Shown: one piece after another, positions 52,328 to 64,000 of the stretch | How the letters are laid out: each line of letters begins with the position of its first letter | Position numbering within the stretch: position 1 is the first letter of the stretch | Source: Klebsormidium nitens | Lineage: Eukaryota > Plantae > Klebsormidiophyceae | Assembly (NCBI GenBank): GCA_000708835.1 | Contig: DF236983.1 | Location: 1-64,000 of the forward strand | Direction of reading: 5' to 3' | Length of the DNA stretch: 64,000 bases | Made by a program: the position numbers and the translations under genes | Notes under the pieces: model-generated | What the model saw: only the letters and a program-made list of their open reading frames with translations | The model's database searches: none | Told to the model about the DNA's origin: nothing

Positions 52328-55300
52328 ATGGCTGCACAACTCCCAGGGTCGGTGGACTCCCCAACATCCAGCTCCCAAACGCAGCCCCTGGAAAGAGAAT
52401 ACCTGACGACGCTGCAAGAAGCGAGCCGGGCCCTATTCTCCCAGGCCCCGCAGGCAAGCGGGCTGCGCAACCAGGCAAAACTCTCACTGACATCATCGAC
52501 GCTCGGGTCTGATGGCCGCCCGAGCCCCCTCACAGCGTTGCAGCAGCAGCAGCAGAATGAGGCGTTTCCAGAACAGTACTTGGCGCCCGTCCAGGGCAGG
52601 GGTTTGGACTTGTCAAGGAGCACGCTCGGGGTGAGTGCCGCAGAAGCTTTTCACAGATCAACATCCGAACCACCTGTCAAAGTTTGTGATGTATGAGTTG
52701 ATAGTGAGTTGGGGCAACTGATCTGGGAATGTGGAGTTGTTTCAGGCACTGTTGCTAAGAAGCTCCACCTGAAAAAGGCGCCTGGATTGTGCGCTCTTTG
52801 TCAGACATCTACATGATGACTTTGTGTGAATACGCCTCACTCAGCAACGGTGAAGGTAGTGGTTTGTTGACAGAGCAGGCTTGAAGTTTACCAATATGCC
52901 TCAAAGCGCCCACAGATGGGAAGGCCTCCTGCTGCACAGTAGAGATTTTGGCTATCAGCAAGCATTTGAAGGAAGGTGCATATTAACTCCAAGATTGATT
53001 CCTTCCATTGCACACAGCTACCACTCAAGTGTTTTCAGCTACCACTCAAGTGTTTGGCATCATCAGAGTCTTCAAAGAGACACTTGACACTTTGCTACTA
53101 GGATCAGGGGATGTCAGTTCTTGACACCGTTGACAACAGCTCAACCTATTTTTCTTTCTGGGAAGATCATATACTGCTGGGGCCATCTCAGTTGTATAAG
53201 CAGCCTGTAGACAATCAAGGACACAGATGTCATATTGCCCTGCTTAAGAAAAGCTCACCACAGCTTCCTCCTGTCCTAAAAGCAACACTTTCGGATGCCC
53301 TCTGGATCTTTCTCGATGTTCCCTGACTCTTTCACATGAATGGCATGCACCTCAACGCCCGCTTTCTGATGAGTGCTCCCTCGTTGTCACAGCAAACGGA
53401 GAGAGACGCTCTCGTTGACGCCGTTTTGAAGTACCAGGAGCTGTTGGTGCGCCTGGGCCACGCACAGGAAGCGCAGGCCATCTCGTCATCCCTTGTGGCT
53501 GCCAGGCGCGCGCAGCGCAGGCTGAGGTACTGTCTTGTATAAATGTTTGCCAAAGCGCGTCACTTTGTACCAGATTTGCTCAGCCTTGATCTTGTGCTTT
53601 CCAAGGTACTGACATGCAAAGAGTATCTGCATTGAACATAGTAGTTGTTTAAGGTGTTGGCTTGTGTATGTCGGTGTTCCCATCAGAACCTCATAGGGCT
53701 TACCAAAGAGGAAGTCATCATAACATCAAGACGTTGGGCGTCGTTCAGCCCTTTCATTCCCAACAAAACTGAACTCGTGTCTTATGCATCTTGAGCTCCT
53801 TCTGGGGTGCCAAAGACGACCTCTAAATTGCAGGTACTTTTGTAGACCCTGCTCGCTGTCACGTCACAAACTTCTTCAAGACAACCACTCTCAATATGTG
53901 CAGTTTTCGCCCCAGTTCCCTGGTTGCTCCGTTGGACGACTCTGCGACCGGGCTCGACATCCTCCTCAAGGACGGTTTCCTTGCGTTCCTGCAACGGCTC
54001 ACACCGCACCTGCCACCCGTGCCACAGCAGGTGCGGCATCACCTGAAAGTTGTGCGGTCTGAGATCCTTCAGATTCCGGTCTCGAAGTTTGGCTTTCTTC
54101 CATGGAAGTCGTAGTTCTGTGTACTGGTCCTCGAGGGGGCATTTAAAAAGCAAAAATGTCCACGAAGACACCATGTCGTGAGTCGGATTGATTTGTGTCA
54201 ACCGTAAGTTGGTCAGGGTGCTATGTATGGAGACGCACTTTCAGTTTGGGAAGTTTGTACTCACGGTTGAGAAGGTTGTCTACAAGCCATAATGGTTCTG
54301 ATTTGCAAGACTGAAACTTTCGAGAGCCTTGGTCGAAGTGGTCGAAGTGGTCCATTCCCCTGCATCACGAACGTGCTGACTTTTTCCTCTCGTTTTTGTG
54401 TCATCCAAGCACAGCCTATGAGCGTTGCTTTCTTATCCAACTTTACCTCGGTTGACGCTCAATTGTTTTCGGAGACGTTTGCAACACTTCTTCGTCGCCG
54501 AAAATCTGCCACTACGTGGATTCGGCAGACTGAAAAGCGTCGCTGACTGAGTCTTTCTTCTTTACTTGACAACCCTGAGGCCCTGTTTTTTGGCAGGTGG
54601 TCAAGTTCAAGAACGTGAGCTACACGTCTCAGATCCGGCGCACCACCAAAGGCTACGCCACAGTCGGCAGCAAGCTGGTGGACTGCTTCGCGCCCTGCAT
54701 GAAGGAGAAGGCGCCCATTGAGATGTTCCACATACTGGTGAGTCAATTTTTTTGGGTTATCCTCGACGTTCTACGTACCGGTCAGGCAGCTTTCGAGATA
54801 ACCCACACATGTCACGTACTCGGCAGGCGGCTTTTGAGATAACCCTGACGTTCCGCATACTGGTGAGGCGGCTCTACTGCGAACCAGATCATTGAAAGAC
54901 GGATCGTCTTTTCGCCTGGCTCCTGTCGTCTCCCGAGCTGGTCCGCGTTGGTCGGTTTGCAGGGAGTGTCAATCTGCTGGCTAGATTATGAAACGTATGC
55001 TTTCTTTCCATTTCTCGAAAATCAGATCCTTTGGGTTTCGAAACGGCTTATCTTGCAGGCCAAAGCTCAGGCGCTGCGCCGTGGAAGCAGACTGTGAAAG
55101 ACGTCAAGCCCCCCGGTCCTTCCGACCTGCAAAAACTCCAAATCTCGATTTGCTTCCCGAAGACGTCAACCCTTCTTTCCGGATCATGTGCAGGACGACT
55201 GCACGGGCTACCTGATGCCTGGCACGCTGACGCTGGTGCTGGGGCCCCCGGGGTGCGGCAAGTCCAGCTTCCATCAGGTGAGGACGCGATACAATACTCG

Positions 55301-58300
55301 TGGTTCTACATTCTGGCACTGGCCGTCTTAAGCGAGCCTCGGAGCGTGTTTGGAGAGCTTCTGCAGCGTGAGCTAAAACCGTCGGAACTTCCCAAATGTC
55401 GCAATTGTGAGGCTCCCCACCGGAAAGAGTCGAGTGCGACTGAGCGTCGAAGATTCTTTTTGGCACATGCAGATGCTTTTAGACGGACACTGTCAATGAT
55501 CATGACCCTGTTATCGAACGTCCCGTGATGCCTGTCTCCTAATAGTGAGCAGGTCTCCTACTTAGACATTCGTCTGGCTAAAATTCACACTTAGAACCTT
55601 GCAAAGACGTGCCGAAAAGCAGTAGACAAACCAAAAAAAACTTGCAACGCTTTTCGCAGGTCTTGGCCGGGCGAGCTTGGACGGACAAGACGACAAAGCT
55701 GACGGGAGAGGTGACGTATAACCACCAGCCGGTCGCGGAGACGCAATACCGACGGCTAGCCACGTACATCGGCCAGGTGGGTCTAGTCAAACCTGCATAG
55801 CCGCGATTCCTCTTTCTTCGTTCCTTTCGGTGGCTTGACAAGTATCTTTCCGACAGGTTTTGGTCTCATTTCATTAGGTCTTTGGCACCCAAATCCGAAC
55901 GATTGAGATTGCTGAAACCCTGCCTGCTCGCCAAGATCATTTGCTCAAAGAACTGCCCCGAGGGTGATACTCTTGTTTCGATCTCCTTTTTGGAGTTTCC
56001 AGACTAACCTTCGCAAATAAACGTAGCGAGGACCGCTCCTGGACCGCTCCCAAGCTTGCTGCTATTTCGTCTAATATAGTCAGTGCAAATCGTCGAGATT
56101 CCCTGGATGTTTAGATCTAGAAAGACTCTTAAGGGAAAGCATACCTTTCTTCCAACCTTATAAACCCGAGACCTTGGACGTACGTTCTTGGAAAGAACTA
56201 AACCCAATTCTTTCTCGGCAGACGGACAAGCACCTGCCGACGCTGACGGTGCGCGAGACGTGCGACTTTGCGCGCGACTGCACGACGGACACGCTGGTGA
56301 CGGACGAGAGCCACCGGCAGTACCTTTTCCAAGTTGGCGGGGCCGTGGGGGAAGCACTTGAAAACCGAGGTGAGTGCACACATTATGGGCTTAGTTACGT
56401 TCTGTTTCGTACGAATTAGCTCACTGAGGACCTATTCCGCACGAAGATGGAGAAAGATATAGATAGCGGACACCAGACTGATGAGATCGTTCGTAGCGCT
56501 GCGGCTGCGTTTGGAACAGTTGCTCAATTTTCTGAGACGCATGGCTTCTGGAACATTTGCATTGTAACTCTGGGATGCATTCCTACATTGCATGGGTAGC
56601 GGACCACTTCCTAACTTGCTTGTTATCGCATGTGGCTAGCTCTTTCAATACAGAAGGGGAGCGTACAAACCTATGCTCCTTTCCTCCAACGCTTCTATAC
56701 CGTGACGACGTCACACTTTTAGTTCCTATCCCGCAAACCTAGGGTTCCGCTTGCTGAAAAGACTCCCATTTTTTGAGCAGGTTATCCTTAACCTGATGGG
56801 CCTGGGTCGCGCCGGCGACACCCCGATCGGCGACCGCGTCCGGCGGGGCGTGAGCGGCGGGGAGCGCCACCGCGTGACGACTGCCGAGATGCTGTGCGGG
56901 ACATACGTCGTCTTCCTCTTCGATGAGATCAGCACGGGGCTCGACAGCTCGGCCACGTAAGCGCGCCGCGTTTCCTGGATAGCATCTTCTTTTGCAAAAG
57001 GACTCGGCTTTTGGCTTTGCAATTGCTGCAGCCTAGCACCGCAGGTGGTGAGCTAAACAGCGGCTCTGGACTCGTTGGGTTTGGGCCTGTAATTGCCATG
57101 CGCCCACTTGCAGACACGACCAACCATTAGTTTGCCAACATTTGCCAGAGATTCAGGTCACCACTCTGCCCCGTTTTCGGATGGTCCGGGCGAAGAGTGG
57201 CCATTCCGCAGAGTCTGCATTCTAGACTTGCCCCGAATCTTGCTCGGAATTGAGTCAGCCGACGGCACAATCTTCCTCTTCTCTACTCACTTCCAGCTTC
57301 CAGCGCCTTCGGGTTTTGATTCTTGGGTTTCTGCCCACTCCCCCCTTTTCAACGAGTTCCGCCCATTCCTGCGAGTTCCGCCCTTTTCCGCACAATCCGC
57401 CCATAACTTCGCCAGCTCTTCTGGTACAGGTACGACATCGTGTCGGCGATCCGCACGCTCGCGCGCACGTCCCAGACGACCAACCTGTTCTCGCTGCTGC
57501 AGCCGTCCCCCGAGGTGTTCGACCTCTTCGACCGCCTCGTGCTCCTCGACGAGGGGCGGATTGTCTACCAGGGGCCGCGCGAGGACGTCCTGCCCTACTT
57601 CGCAAAGCTGGGGTGAGCCGCCCCGTTCAATTTCTTTGCGTGGCAGGGACTTCATATGTATGGTTCTGTCCTCAAAGCTTGGGCATTCTTAGTTGTAAAG
57701 AAGCGGACTATAGGCAGGTGGCTCGAACGATCTGTCCCATCCGGAGCTCGGGTATCGCCAGCTCTTTGGCACGGTGGTTTAATTATGTCGGGGCTTGTGT
57801 GGCTACCCGGTCTTCTCAAGTTGCACCTTTGTGGCAGACTTCAAGGTCATAGTATTCGAGCTTATAACCAGAGGCTCTGGCTTTAGAAGCCTTTGATATC
57901 GGTCCCGGTGAAGGCTTGTGGGCTTTCAGGTTCCTCGACTCTCAGGCTTCGTAGTCAAGAGCCTGAGCCTAAGTACGTTGTAAAGCAGAATAGTGCCAAT
58001 CACCAGCCTACTCAGAATACTTTTCATGGTCACTAGCCGTTCTGACCTCTTCTTCATAGCTGCTTCAAGCCCAATGTCCAAGAGTCCTCTTCTGAACGTT
58101 ACAACTTGCAGTTTTTCCTATACTGTTGATGACGTGCCCTGTGCCTTGCAGTTACTTCAAGCCAAAGCACGTCGATGTCGCCGACTTCCTCCAAGAAGTG
58201 ACCACCGAGGCGGGGCGCATCTTTTTGCGCTCCGGTTTCCGAGCGCTCGACAGCCTCGGCTTTGCGGCGGCCTACAAGGCCAGCGAGCCGTTCGCAGAGG

Positions 58301-61300
58301 TGCAGCGGGTGGTGGAGAGCCCCGAGCTGAACCGCGAGATCGGGCTGTTTGGAGCCAAGCCGCTGGGGCTGCTCCTCGAGGACGGGAAAGTGCCCGGTGA
58401 GTGCATAAGCCCCTGCGATCTTTGCGCGCATCAAAGAGATGCGTGTTATGCGAGTGCCAAGCGGAAGTGACGGCCATTGAGCTGTTGAGGTGGCACCAAA
58501 AAGAAACAGAGACGCCAAGTGGTCTTCACTCGGTTGAATCTTTGACGGCTCACAAAAGGAAACTTTACTTGATTCGGATGGTGCTTTTAGAGTTTTCCCG
58601 CCGATTCATCTCTTCGACGTTGGACTGTTCAAACAGTTTCTGCTCTTTTGAATGCGGATTGCCCTGCTTCACGTGTATTCCGGCTTGGCGCTCAAGTGTG
58701 CCGCTCAAATGCCTCGGAATTGCTTCAACCTCTCTTTCTAGGACCAGGCGCAACTTGAAGATCATCCGGCCCTTCACTTGCTCTGCTTCTCAATCATTCA
58801 AGATTCGCGTGGCCATGTGGGTATGCCAGTCCTGATTCTTAGAGCAGAGCGTGCTGCCATCTGATCGGCAACCCCGATCTTACTCTAGATCCTCAGAATT
58901 GAATTCAAGGCAAAGTCTTTGCATGAATAAACAACCATTCAAACAGGAAGAAGAACCTGTCTCATTTCTTCGCCCAGCTGCTCTTCCCGTCATCGCCTCC
59001 TTGGACCCCTCCGGCAGCCTGGCCGCCGCTTCTGTCGTCAGCACGGACAAGGCCCAGCCCGGGGACGCCGTGACCGCCGTCTCCGGACCGTCCGGCAGCC
59101 TGGAGTATCTGGCGCTCAAAGACTCGGACGTCCGGACTGCGTCCGCAGTGGAGGGGCTCCTCGAGGCGTCGATGGACCCCGTGCGGCTGCAGGTGCAGCG
59201 GCCGGTCAATAAGGTAAGCGTGCAATGACGTCACCATCAACCTCAGTGGTGATTGTCGTTACGAGCTCAACGACGCTAAACAACCAAGCACAATATGACC
59301 TGCTCCGCACCTCAACCCATGCTAACACCCCTACTAAGCGGACCCGTCCTTGGCAAGTTCGATAAACCGACTGGTGGCTCGCTTGGTCCAGCTTCGTCCA
59401 AGCCTCGCTGACTCCCCTCTAATAGGACGCCAAACAGTCTAGATTCTGGAATTCTCGACTGGGCCGAATCCCTGTTTTCTGAACGAAAAACAAGAGACAC
59501 GTAACTGAGTAACTTTGAGCGACTCAAAATTCTCTCGTCCGCCGGAACCATACACCGTGAATCAAGCCTTCCAATCGGAACGTCTCAATGGGAGCCCGTT
59601 AATGAGTCTGCAATTCCAATTTTCTGACTGCTCCATATGTGCCTTTCCGTGTCCAGGAGGTGGGCTCCGAGTGGGCGACCTTCCTGTCCCGGGAGTTCGT
59701 GCAGCCAGTCTGGGAGAACACCAAGACCGTCTTCCGCCGCCAGTTCAAGGTCGCCATTCGCAACACCGTCTTCCTCTACGCCAGGCTCTTCCAGGTACGG
59801 GCACCGAAGCGTTGGCTGCGGAATTTGGGTCATATAGAGGAAGATAAGAAACTGAGAGAAGAAACTGATCAGGGGAATATGTTGAGAGGCTCAAACATTT
59901 TCGGACGGGGCCACCATGTGACGCTTTCAGTCGTGTTGTTGTGCGAAATTCGCCGAGATTGTCTGCTCTTGTCCGCATCGATAATATGTGATAGGAGCAC
60001 TTTACTGTTGTAGTGACTTCTCTAGACAAGCGACAAGGGAGGATAAAGCCATTCATCGTCAAGCACTCCAACAATCCCCCTCGTCATTCTGCCATCTTGG
60101 TGGTAACCTTCTATTACTGGACGTCTTCCAAGCAGATTGATATCCTCACCTTCCCCCTCATCAAGCCTTATATCAACACGTTTCTAAAAGCACTACTGTC
60201 TGCCATTGCCCCGTCAAACCCGCTAGGCTTCCCCCGCAGGTGTTGGTGCTGGGCACGTTCACGGGCACGGTGTTTTACCAGATCTCCAAGAATCCGACGC
60301 AGACGGACATGGACCTGCGCAAGTCGATCTCTTTCATCGCCGTGCTGGCAATGGCGCTCGGCGCTATGGCGCAGATCCCCAGCCAGATTGACGAGCGAGT
60401 GGTGAGCTGGGAACGGAAGGGAACGGAACGGTCTGGTGCTGAACGGAAGAAAGTGAAATGGACTTGTGCTCAACGCATCCATCCTTTCAAGATGGCGGAG
60501 AGTCGGGACACGACCAGCCTGTCTGGGCTCCGACTTTTGTATCCCGCTACACAATACAAAGCGCTCGGAAACTTTGTTCCACTGCCCTTTGGAACAAGTC
60601 CATGATGACAAACGGCCTTGAACGTTGAGCAGACTGCGTCTCTGGCGAAAGCAAAAGATAGCCCTGGTATCCACCGGTATTATCTTCATTGCCACGGCAT
60701 ACTAAATCTGAGGTTTCGCAGGTGTTCTACAAGCACCACGACGCCCGCTTCTTCCGAGCCAAGGCATACGCTATGGCGCTCGTGATTGCGGGCATCCCGT
60801 TCAGCTTCATGGAGGTGAGGCGTCCAAACTATTGTCTTGAGTCAGCCAAGGAAGGACGTGGCTTCAAGTCAACCGGATGACCTCCTTGGTTCTTGCTGCT
60901 TTCGGCTTCGATGATCGGTTGGATAGCGTTCTTGTGAGCCTTTGTGAAATCCTATTTAGCTGGGGGACGTGACAGTCAGCTCGTGCCTGTTTGTTGGAGG
61001 AGTTTATGGATGAGGGCTCACCAGCAGCAGCACGTCCCCTGCAGAACAGTATCACTACACCAGGGCGAATCAACGTAACCTCAAAAGTCAGCAAGTCTCA
61101 CATATTTGGAGCATGCCCCGTTATCTGACCACGCTTCGACAGCCCTCACCGCATCATCAGGCAGAAGAAGTGCCACTAACGCTTTGACAATGCCGGTCCA
61201 CTTTGGCGACTCTGAATACTTAGAAGTCCGAAATCTTGACGCTCTACAACCCTCCAGAAATTGGACATACTTTGAATGTTTTGCAGATTATCGTGTACTG

Positions 61301-64000
61301 CCCGTTGCTGTACTTCTTGACTGGCCTGAGCCTGGAGACGAATGGCGCGCACTTCTTCATCTTCCTGCTCATCGTGTTCGTGGCCGCGCTCTTCGGCTCC
61401 GCGCTCGTGCGCCTTCTCGCCGCCATCTCGCCGTCCAGAGAAGCCGCGGGCGGCCTCGCAGGTGGGCGTCCGAACAGCTTCTCACGTAGCTCTGTGCGTC
61501 CGAACACGATCTTGTGTGTGTTTGAACGGTGCATTTCTGCCTCGCAGAGCTGATTGTGGATTTCAGGGGCAATGTGCTGCATCGGACGGTGACCTTGTGC
61601 TCGAACGAGGATAATGCGCGTCAGTGTCTTTGTTTGCGAGCGGTAACTTGTGCGTCTTAACGGTGGCATTCTGATTCTGATCGGATGTGTTCTACCGCGT
61701 CGAGATAGTCGTCCATGCGTCTAAAGGGGATCCTGATCGCGTTGAATTGCATAGATTCGCGTCTCGACGGCCATACGCAGTGCGTTTAGAAGGTCACATG
61801 GGATGCCCGTCAGCGTATGCAGAGCCAGCGCTTGCGTATGAGCAGGGTCATGGGCTCATCTAACGGCCAGAAATTGTCCGCCAGGCCCTAGCCGGAACTC
61901 CGTCGGGAGCGGAATCAACCCTTTGACACGTCTCGTTCAATCTTCTAGCGTAAGGATTCAGCTATAAGTCCGACACTGTAGACTGTCAAGTTGAAGTCGT
62001 AGAATCTCCAGCCTATCTTGTGTTTGAACTCCTAGTCCGGTTGCATCCGGTACAACTCAGAACTTTTAAGTCCCTTGCCGTGTCGGGGTCCTTTTTCGTC
62101 TTTTTACAATTCCTTTTCTTTGATTGTGCTCAGGTCTGTTCGTCATCCTGCTCTTGCTCTTCTCGGGCTTCCTCATCGTAAAGAACAAGATCCCCCCATG
62201 GTGGTGAGTCCCAGCTCGTTTCTTTCTGTTTTTGTTTTTCCTTTCTTTTCTCCTTTACTTTCTTCCTTTCGTTTTTCTTTTTGATTCTCCCGCTTCCCTC
62301 CTGATCAAAACGCGTTGAATGCCCTAACAATGAGCAGTCACGAAGTTTTTGGACTATTCAACACGCGAAAGAGGGAAGATGCCATGGTGCCTGCATTGCT
62401 AATCCAGATTGTTTCAGCTGCCTGTCTTTCAGACACTGGCTTGCCTGACTGCACCCCAGTACCGCAGGAACCCGCGGAGCTGACGTCGCTGCTGACGTCT
62501 TTTTCTCCATCGTATTTCCCACCCCCAGGATCTGGTTCTACTACATCAACCCGCTGCAGTACGCCTACACGTCGATCGTCCTCAACGAATTTCTCTCGGG
62601 TACCTACGACTACCCCTGCAGCGATCCACGTGTCGACCTGGCAACCGCTTCTTTCTGCCGCGGCAAGCCGGACACGAGTGTTGCGGAAGCGTACTTGGCA
62701 ATCTACAAGTTCCCCAAAGGTTTCGGCCAAGTCTGGCTGGGCATCGGCGTGCTGTTCGCGTTCTACGTCTTCTTCACGATCCTCACCTTCATTGCCATGG
62801 AGAAAGTCAGGTGGGCTCATTGTGCTCGAGGGTTTGGCAGGGCTTTGACGCTCGACGTTCAAATACTCCGACGTTTTAACGCTAGCAGCAATTCAAGGGC
62901 CCTTTCGAAGAGAATAGCGCACAATCTCAAACCTTCGGAGATTGATACAGGCGCTTCTGCTTTGCACCACCCAACTGAAGCCGCTTGGAAGTACTACTAG
63001 CCGCTATGGTAGCTCATGCGAAGGCACGAGAAGGCTTCTGCTCTGTCCAGCTTTACTTCCTTATCGCAGGCGGACCTAGTTTTTAGCAGATTGAGGAAAT
63101 AGAGCGAGCGGCATCGTACGTCAACTGATTCAACTCTCCGCGTAAATTCTCGTTTGCAGGTTCCCCGACCAGAAGAACCCCCCCGCGCTCGCACCCTCCC
63201 GGCAAAAGAAGATGGTGATGCAAACGAGGCCGCCCCCGAAGCCATCGAAGCCGCCCCGACTGCTTCGACAGTGCACTCTGGCAATGGCGCCAACGGCGCT
63301 ACAAACGGTCGGGAGATCGAAGTGAGCAACGGCGGTGATGTGGAGCTGGGCGAACTGCCTGCCGGGGCCAAGTCCCCGGTGAAGTCCTCCGGGCTGGCGT
63401 TCCTGCCCATTACGCTCTCCTTCCACGACATCGTGTACGAGGTAACTCTCCGACCCTTGGCTGCAAATTCTGACAAATTCTTGACAAATCTTGGCCAGGT
63501 AACCAAAGATGGAGGCGCGGCGGAGAAGAGAAAACTCGTAAACAGCACAAAGGTATCGGTGGCTCTGTGCTCGACTGTGAACCCCTCCAAACGTAAGGAG
63601 GCAGCAAGTGCGACCAGCCTCATCCCTGGATCTTGGGGGGTGCCCGCGAGTTTGAGGAGTTGTCTATCATTGATGAGCGTTTTCGTACTTAGGCTCCCCC
63701 TGTCCATTGAATCCACTCCAACGCTCCCCTCGGCCGAAGGCTTTGACGGCTGTCTGCAGACTGCATCGAGGCGGCCAGGTTTGACATACTCTGCGATTCT
63801 CCTTCAAGCCAACGGCTCTCGCACTGATCTCTTCGCCCCGGTTGTCCAGATCGACGTCCCGGGCGCGTCCGAGCCTCGCGTGCTGCTTAACTACGTGTCT
63901 GGTTACGCAAAACCGGGCACCATGACGGCGCTCATGGGCAGCTCGGGGGCGGGCAAGACGACTCTGCTGGACGTGCTGGCCGGGCGGAAGACAACCGGGC
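52328..64000 (+). CDS. ABCG: Full-size ABCG (PDR-type) transporter, NBD1-(PDZ-like insert)-TMD1-NBD2..., incomplete at the window end
   Basis: NBD1: [13 protein letters not shown] (exon 55194-55277), [54 protein letters not shown]1: [61 protein letters not shown]2 start: [49 protein letters not shown]. The start codon at 52328 is inferred. Confidence 0.93.
54722..54872 (+). repeat. About 41-43 bp tandem repeat (about 3.5 copies) spanning an ABCG exon end and 5' splice site
   Basis: Units start at 54722 (gatgttccacatactg|gtgag), 54765, about 54806 and 54847 (gacgttccgcatactggtgag). Confidence 0.65.

Follow-up and report, generated by a model that had tools for sequence, protein, structure and literature searches.

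In the first 64,000 nucleotides of Klebsormidium nitens contig DF236983.1 (assembly GCA_000708835.1; this whole stretch is referred to below as the window), a full-size ABCG/PDR transporter gene carries an insert in the connector between its first nucleotide-binding domain (NBD1) and its first transmembrane domain (TMD1). Homology and structure modelling support the identification of this insert as a divergent PDZ domain of approximately 95 residues that has the canonical, non-permuted strand order, with helix 1 replaced by a long loop; in the case of the window sequence itself, this identification runs through a homologue with 43% identity. Sequence comparison indicates that the insert is a hallmark of an old clade of streptophyte ABCGs that is represented in Klebsormidium-like algae, Zygnematophyceae, moss, lycophyte and ferns. 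To the fuller proposition, namely that the insert is a cytosolic PDZ-fold domain in the NBD1-TMD1 connector, that it marks this clade and that its groove is, as predicted, still capable of binding peptide, we give even chances. An original prediction made from the letters of the window had read a PDZ-like domain as fused in cis into a full-size ABCG, between its NBD1 and TMD1, and the analysis that follows supports this placement, in the case of the window sequence by way of its homologues.

The insert is encoded by two exons whose splicing is documented in transcripts. At approximately 58-60 kb, the forward strand is organized into short GC-rich exons with introns of 440-580 nt between them, and translation of frame 58153-58395 followed by frame 58980-59213 gives the PDZ-like insert peptide letter for letter as it was first read. 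A split codon, with G at 58396 and CT at 58978-58979, encodes alanine and joins exon 58152-58396 to exon 58978-59213 (the latter referred to below as exon 2), and frame 59657-59794 translates to the pre-TMD1 connecting segment that begins with EVGSEW. For transcript evidence, we placed Logan contigs from four runs (X1, X5, X6 and X7, which come from four studies and carry two organism labels) on positions 57300-60400. Joints 57612/58152, 58396/58978, 59213/59657 and 59794/60240 are each of the GT..AG type and were recovered with no mismatches, on one long contig per run, in all four runs. The claim that the two insert-encoding exons splice in phase is thus borne out by both translation and transcripts. 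Of the junctions that had been given with it, 58396/58978 is confirmed by the RNA contigs, and 59213/59658 requires correction because the downstream exon starts at 59657. We also considered whether exon 2 is an alternative exon that is skipped in transcripts, an outcome that the original prediction had named as one that would speak against the domain. No contig that skips this 236-nt exon was seen in the four runs, with the proviso that rare isoforms can be lost in contigs, and its omission would shift the reading frame; on these two grounds the skipped-exon reading was rejected. As a separate observation, the preceding intron at 57613-58151 is covered in whole or in part by low-depth contigs in all four runs (a depth of approximately 4, compared with 20-56 for spliced contigs; record 2 of run X1, for example, covers 57592-58180), which could reflect retention of the intron, pre-mRNA, or DNA carried over into the RNA runs.

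For structure prediction, we used residues 96-216 of the contiguous homologue P0008, which is 43% identical to the window, and folded this sequence with AlphaFold2 from an eight-sequence alignment. The best model has a predicted local distance difference test score (pLDDT) of 73 and a predicted template modelling score (pTM) of 0.68, and its elements are, in order, strands E14-20, E26-31, E34-40, E64-69 and E75-77, helix H87-96 and strand E101-107. When this model was used as a Foldseek query, the top 50 matches were all PDZ domains. VIA-align superimposed it on the first PDZ domain of Scribble (PDZ1) with a Z score of 11.9 and a root-mean-square deviation (rmsd) of 1.4 Å over 82 residues, and an unbiased structural alignment against 48,161 representative chains likewise returned PDZ domains at all of the top 50 positions, with Z scores of 9.9-11.8. 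Models that lack a true match typically reach a best Z score of 7-8, according to the tool's own note. The window's exon 2, folded singly, gave a low-confidence model with a pLDDT of 62 and a pTM of 0.45 in which strands 4 and 5, helix 2 and strand 6 follow one another in the correct order; its poor folding by itself is explained by the fact that strands 1 and 2 are encoded in the preceding exon.

Sequence comparison also points to PDZ domains. Family profiles searched against the PDB retrieved the PDZ domains of PDLIM2 with E values of 0.0016-0.007 and in the correct register, such that the GD-x-V-x-A motif falls in strand 4 and RLQL-x-R in strand 6. An x-Φ-G-Φ (GLGF-type) loop with the pattern P-[LHP]-G-[LVI]-x-[FL] precedes strand 2 in 10 of 11 sequences, reading KPLGLLL in the window, PPLGVEF in ferns, QPLGLAF or QPHGIRF in Mesotaenium, and KPLGLGF in moss, where it corresponds to the classical GLGF carboxylate-binding loop. 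Across the family, the core motifs GD-x-VVA and VRLQLERP are nearly invariant, and the order of motifs that had first drawn attention to the insert, from KPLG-hhh to VRLQVQRP, is real, being conserved far above chance in 13 homologous sequences from other organisms. Among the protein-language-model neighbours of exon 2, all of those with any Pfam family fall into PDZ families, with scores of 0.83-0.90, a result that we treat as a lead only.

Several results weigh against a PDZ assignment. Pfam, which the original prediction had proposed as a check on the insert, gave no PDZ match for the window exons taken singly, even at an E value of 10, and none for P0008 or P0021; indeed, the gathering scores of the Pfam PDZ models are not attained by any family member that we examined. 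The Pfam model PDZ_6 scores 25.0 bits on P0005 (cut-off 27), in which the block is present twice, and 17 bits on a single copy, and the precomputed PDZ_6 label of P0005 is due solely to this doubling of the block in its gene model. A phmmer search of the PDB with exon 2 returned only a chance row to a BMC shell protein, with an E value of 1. On the structural side, the other four of the five AlphaFold2 models have pLDDT values of only 37-57, the alignment behind them comprises just eight sequences, helix 1 is absent from the best model, in which a long and poorly predicted loop takes its place, and Foldseek with the exon 2 model placed PDZ rows on top with E values of 2.5 or worse, which are non-significant. 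Finally, the loop of P0008 itself reads KPLRLTL, with arginine replacing the glycine.

Taken at face value, the absent or sub-threshold Pfam matches, the low confidence in four of the five AlphaFold2 models and the PDB profile E value of only approximately 0.002 could mean that the insert is not a true PDZ homologue, and is instead a lineage-specific expansion of a beta-rich linker whose likeness to PDZ domains arose by convergence or is an artefact of predicting a structure on a shallow alignment. This explanation has to contend with Z scores of up to 11.8 and a top 50 made up entirely of PDZ domains, as opposed to the 7-8 typical of unmatched models. Moreover, four lines that do not depend on one another, namely the profile match, the predicted fold and its fold searches, the GLGF-type loop and the language-model features, indicate PDZ and nothing else. 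Because these lines agree, we consider the PDZ assignment to be supported and its non-homologous counterpart to be very improbable.

The gene that harbors the insert is a full-size ABCG. Searches with full-length relatives using tblastn place NBD1, TMD1 and the second Walker A motif collinearly on the forward strand, and exon-wise Pfam searches detect the start of ABC2_membrane_7 at 57440-57613, ABC2_membrane at 60240-61550 (35.6 bits) and PDR_CDR/PDR_assoc at 62695-62997. The reverse NBD-TMD order of this transporter type is found within the window, with NBD1 at 55188-57612, TMD1 at 60240-62838 and the start of NBD2 at 63859-63996, and the remainder of the gene lies beyond the window end. The relatives P0021, P0025 and locus L002 are complete full-size ABCGs.

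We next turn to the relatives of the insert and the constraint under which it evolves. A phmmer search with exon 2 against 1.84 billion representative proteins gave eight matches, six of which are the same insert: P0001 (91% identity to exon 2), P0002 (72%), P0004 (60%), P0008 (44%), P0007 (41%) and P0005 (35%), the last of these being a 1213-residue ABCG model from Mesotaenium endlicherianum. The bacterial proteins P0003 and P0006 match query residues 4-53 only and were rejected as repeat-protein false positives. On the contigs that encode the six relatives, ABCG exons flank the insert in the same order, and each insert sits at the same place in an ABCG gene. The two exon pieces of the window align collinearly to residues 49-128 and 130-202 of P0008, with 43% identity. 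At the P0008 locus (L001:732-1433), the DFLQEV segment and the whole insert form one uninterrupted exon, and the phase-1 intron at 58397-58977 is therefore not common to all members of the family. The ratio of nonsynonymous to synonymous substitution rates (dN/dS) for the insert exon is 0.15 and 0.19 relative to the two closest relatives, which is similar to the preceding exon and indicates that the insert exon is under purifying selection.

A number of further observations concern individual relatives. L001, which is 44% identical, derives from the same sample (SRR23617307) as the 91% identical relative L006. The 18.5-kb ENA metagenome contig ERZ24794433 contains a complete PDZ-bearing full-size ABCG (L002:4274-17686) with 41% identity in the insert, and IMG labels a fragment of the L002 cluster 'C-terminal processing protease CtpA/Prc', presumably on account of its resemblance to PDZ domains. 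In P0005 (ME000174S02104), the PDZ-like block and its flanks are present twice, at residues 407-491 and 537-618, in letter-identical form, reflecting either a recent tandem exon duplication or an artefact of assembly or annotation. This gene and the PDZ-bearing paralogue P0021 (S02102) lie on the same Mesotaenium scaffold, ME000174, and their near-consecutive gene numbers (S02104 and S02102) suggest tandem duplication. Another Mesotaenium relative, P0023 (ME000082S09965), has a gene model without the insert. A word-index search with the P0005 insert alone recovered only P0005 itself, and the addition of its flanks brought in the neighbouring Mesotaenium paralogue and one PDZ-less ABCG.

The insert extends well into land plants. 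A word search with P0021, the Mesotaenium paralogue of 1534 residues in which the insert occupies residues ~440-540, recovered ABCGs of Spirogloea, Physcomitrium, Adiantum, Diphasiastrum, Pteridium and Ceratopteris, including three copies from Spirogloea muscicola and, from Physcomitrium patens, the RefSeq protein XP_024367765.1, which is named 'ABC transporter G family member 31 / 51-like'. Using small family profiles, hmmsearch detected the insert in ABCGs of these genera and of Mesotaenium with E values of 1e-12 to 1e-30; three other ABCGs, P0022, P0023 and P0031, gave no match to it. In a full-length alignment it stands out as 95-125 cleanly inserted residues, flanked by '...RVVESPEL' and '...Y-x-R-x-YV...W-x-E', and exon 2 of the window is 41% identical to the moss protein (pairwise E value 3e-13). 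The original prediction had assumed only a short linker at this position in plant PDR transporters. Given that ABCGs of a moss, a lycophyte and ferns belong to a clade with this same insert, that premise was too broad.

A clade with a matching distribution has been described before. Cho et al. (Physiol Plant 2020, PMC8359288) described V1-type ABCGs, which are early-diverged full-size transporters of Chara, Klebsormidium, mosses, Selaginella and Amborella that are missing in other angiosperms. The taxon range of the V1-type matches that of the PDZ-bearing clade and, going by this range, the two are probably the same. The words 'insertion', 'linker' and 'additional domain' are absent from the text of that paper (PMC8359288).

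With respect to function, we envisage that the peptide groove between strand 2 and helix 2 would still bind a short peptide, one that a partner protein would supply as its C-terminal tail or an internal hairpin and that would not be the transporter's own tail. Since the domain lies directly on the element under the membrane that couples NBD1 to TMD1, such binding would be expected to recruit or place the transporter, or to adjust how its ATPase activity is coupled to transport. In this scheme, a PDZ adaptor of the kind that acts in trans on CFTR and other animal ABC transporters would be fused in cis. Retention of the carboxylate-binding loop from algae to ferns suggests that the groove is probably still used. 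The transporter's own C-terminus was considered as a ligand and judged unlikely, given that the tails are short and basic (…LKHNK, …RHYRKT and …MKYDRR), end in K, R, T or H and lack a hydrophobic last residue; such tails would be ill suited as canonical ligands, and the groove is more likely to receive a partner's tail or an internal hairpin. We therefore put forward as a tentative model, in which our confidence falls somewhat short of even, that the insert is a PDZ domain that still functions in peptide binding and is placed in cis on the NBD1-TMD1 element, that the tail of a partner switches or positions the pump, and that this arrangement was kept from Klebsormidium to ferns and lost toward most flowering plants.

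The basic tails of the transporters and two properties of the domain speak against a groove that is still at work: helix 2 differs in its residues from one family member to another and helix 1 is replaced by a long loop, as a consequence of which the groove may not bind a common ligand. In the main rival of the partner-tail model, the PDZ fold was kept and trans binding was lost, leaving an intramolecular regulatory or structural module that packs on NBD1, NBD2 or the linker between the two halves and modulates the transport cycle, comparable to a Pdr5-type linker domain or a regulatory insertion. The location of the insert directly on the NBD1-TMD1 connector would suit such a module, as would the existence of one relative without the loop glycine, the lack of a canonical PDZ-binding tail on the transporter itself, and the variability of helix 2, the element that sets PDZ ligand specificity, in a family whose core motifs GD-x-VVA and VRLQLERP hardly vary. 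An x-Φ-G-Φ loop that is kept from algae to ferns is hard to square with an idle groove, but a segment of the same chain could fill it. On balance, we regard the intramolecular module as rather unlikely, while taking it seriously as the principal competitor of a groove that receives a partner's peptide.

A further possibility is that the domain acts as a membrane or lipid sensor, binding phosphoinositides or the inner leaflet in the manner of syntenin and PICK1 and thereby coupling the activity or placement of the transporter to lipid composition. Because the pre-TM1 connecting segment comes directly after it, the domain must adjoin the inner leaflet, and ABCG transporters often handle lipids and hydrophobic compounds. 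The PDZ domains of syntenin and PICK1 are among the structural matches, as are all other PDZ domains. We identified no basic patch or lipid-binding motif in the domain, which in the window is acidic to neutral in the regions seen, and a lipid-sensing role thus appears improbable to us; together with the non-homologous look-alike, it belongs to the less likely explanations.

The features of the transporter gene are collected in the table below. Upstream of them, exons at 53336-54075 encode an N-terminal extension without a Pfam match. The moss, Mesotaenium and Spirogloea proteins have this extension too, and it may be a second element specific to the clade.

Table. Features of the PDZ-bearing ABCG gene in the window and the evidence on which each is based.
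Feature	Position	Strand	Evidence
NBD1, exon part with Walker A (GPPGCGKSS)	55188..55280	+	Pfam ABC_tran/AAA; tblastn with P0021, 71% identity
NBD1, exon with ABC signature VSGGERHRV and Walker B	56781..56957	+	Pfam ABC_tran, E 5.6e-4; tblastn
Exon, end of NBD1	57430..57612	+	RNA contigs, joint 57612/58152; PF19055 match
Exon part, DFLQEV and helical post-NBD1 segment common to other ABCGs	58152..58332	+	Translation; 43% identity to P0008 residues 49-108
PDZ-like domain, part 1: strand 1, carboxylate-binding loop KPLGL, strand 2	58333..58396	+	Equivalent to E14-20 and E26-31 in the P0008 model
Intron, 581 nt, GT..AG, phase 1, between PDZ strands 2 and 3	58397..58977	+	Joint in four runs; absent in relative locus L001
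PDZ-like domain, part 2 (ALPVIAS...): strand 3, long loop replacing helix 1, strands 4-5, helix 2, strand 6	58978..59213	+	Translation; RNA joints; dN/dS 0.15-0.19
Intron, 443 nt, GT..AG, phase 0, C-terminal edge of the insert	59214..59656	+	RNA joint; sequence
Exon, pre-TMD1 connecting segment (EVGSEW...)	59657..59794	+	RNA joints; aligns after the insert in all ABCGs
First TMD1 exon	60240..60422	+	Joint 59794/60240; ABC2_membrane; tblastn
End of TMD1, PDR_CDR / PDR_assoc region	62530..62838	+	Pfam PDR_CDR, 23.7 bits (cut-off 20.5); tblastn
Start of NBD2, second Walker A; gene continues past the window end	63859..63996	+	tblastn, P0025 residues 1130-1179, 58% identity

In the full-text literature that we searched, no description of an ABCG/PDR transporter with its own PDZ domain in cis was found, and the PDZ-ABC links that we did find are animal trans interactions only. 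This agrees with the original prediction, which knew of no described example, and the fusion appears to be undescribed even though both of its parts are familiar and the sequences are public, where they are annotated as ordinary ABCGs. Since the PDZ domain is sub-threshold in Pfam and is missed by standard annotation, moss, fern and lycophyte entries in RefSeq and UniProt are named ABCG31/51-like or uncharacterised. Recognition of the insert provides a molecular hallmark for an early-diverged and functionally unstudied ABCG clade of the plant lineage, and with it a handle for study, in that the groove can be mutated, the domain can serve as bait in screens for partners, and an orthologue exists in a genetically tractable moss. 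If the partner-tail model is true, the protein would become the first ABC transporter to contain a PDZ gate of its own, and its PDZ domain would rank among the very few functional canonical-type PDZ modules of the plant lineage.

Each half of the fusion can be compared with a known system. Relative to canonical PDZ domains (Pfam PF00595 / PF17820; Scribble PDZ1, PDLIM2, NHERF1 PDZ1 and PSD-95), the insert matches in predicted fold and strand order (Z scores of 11.7-11.9 and rmsd of 1.4-2.9 Å over 82-86 residues) and has in common with them the x-Φ-G-Φ loop, a GD-x-[IV]-x-A strand 4 and a [RL]LQ[LV]-x-R strand 6. It differs from them in being only 17-25% identical, in scoring below the Pfam gathering thresholds and in having a long loop instead of helix 1, and whereas a canonical PDZ domain resides in a soluble scaffold, this one is placed within a membrane transporter. 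The transporter itself shares with full-size ABCG/PDR proteins of the yeast Pdr5 and plant ABCG36/PDR8 type the reverse NBD-TMD-NBD-TMD order, Walker A, the ABC signature, ABC2_membrane and PDR_CDR. In the usual ABCG/PDR protein, however, the post-NBD1 helices lead nearly straight into the pre-TM1 segment (P0031 is an example), whereas here 95-125 extra residues intervene.

PDZ domains that are fused to a catalytic machine and serve as its gate or sensor are also known from the site-2 protease RseP and from HtrA/DegP and CtpA/Prc. These occur in proteases and are for the most part bacterial-type, circularly permuted domains, whereas the insert has the canonical order; the HtrA rows in our family-profile search of the PDB are weak (E value ~0.3) and fall in the protease part (residues 79-121), not in the PDZ domain. 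The remaining comparison is with the animal PDZ adaptors that act in trans, of which NHERF1/PDZK1 act on CFTR, MRP2 and ABCC6 and PDZK1 is linked to the expression of ABCG2, with roles in placement, stability and regulation. In that system the transporter supplies the C-terminal ligand and the PDZ domain is on another protein, whereas in the transporter described here the PDZ domain lies within the transporter, whose own tail does not qualify as a canonical ligand. The animal arrangement, in which a transporter tail binds a PDZ adaptor, would thus be reversed, which bears on how transporters are positioned and regulated in streptophyte algae and early land plants.

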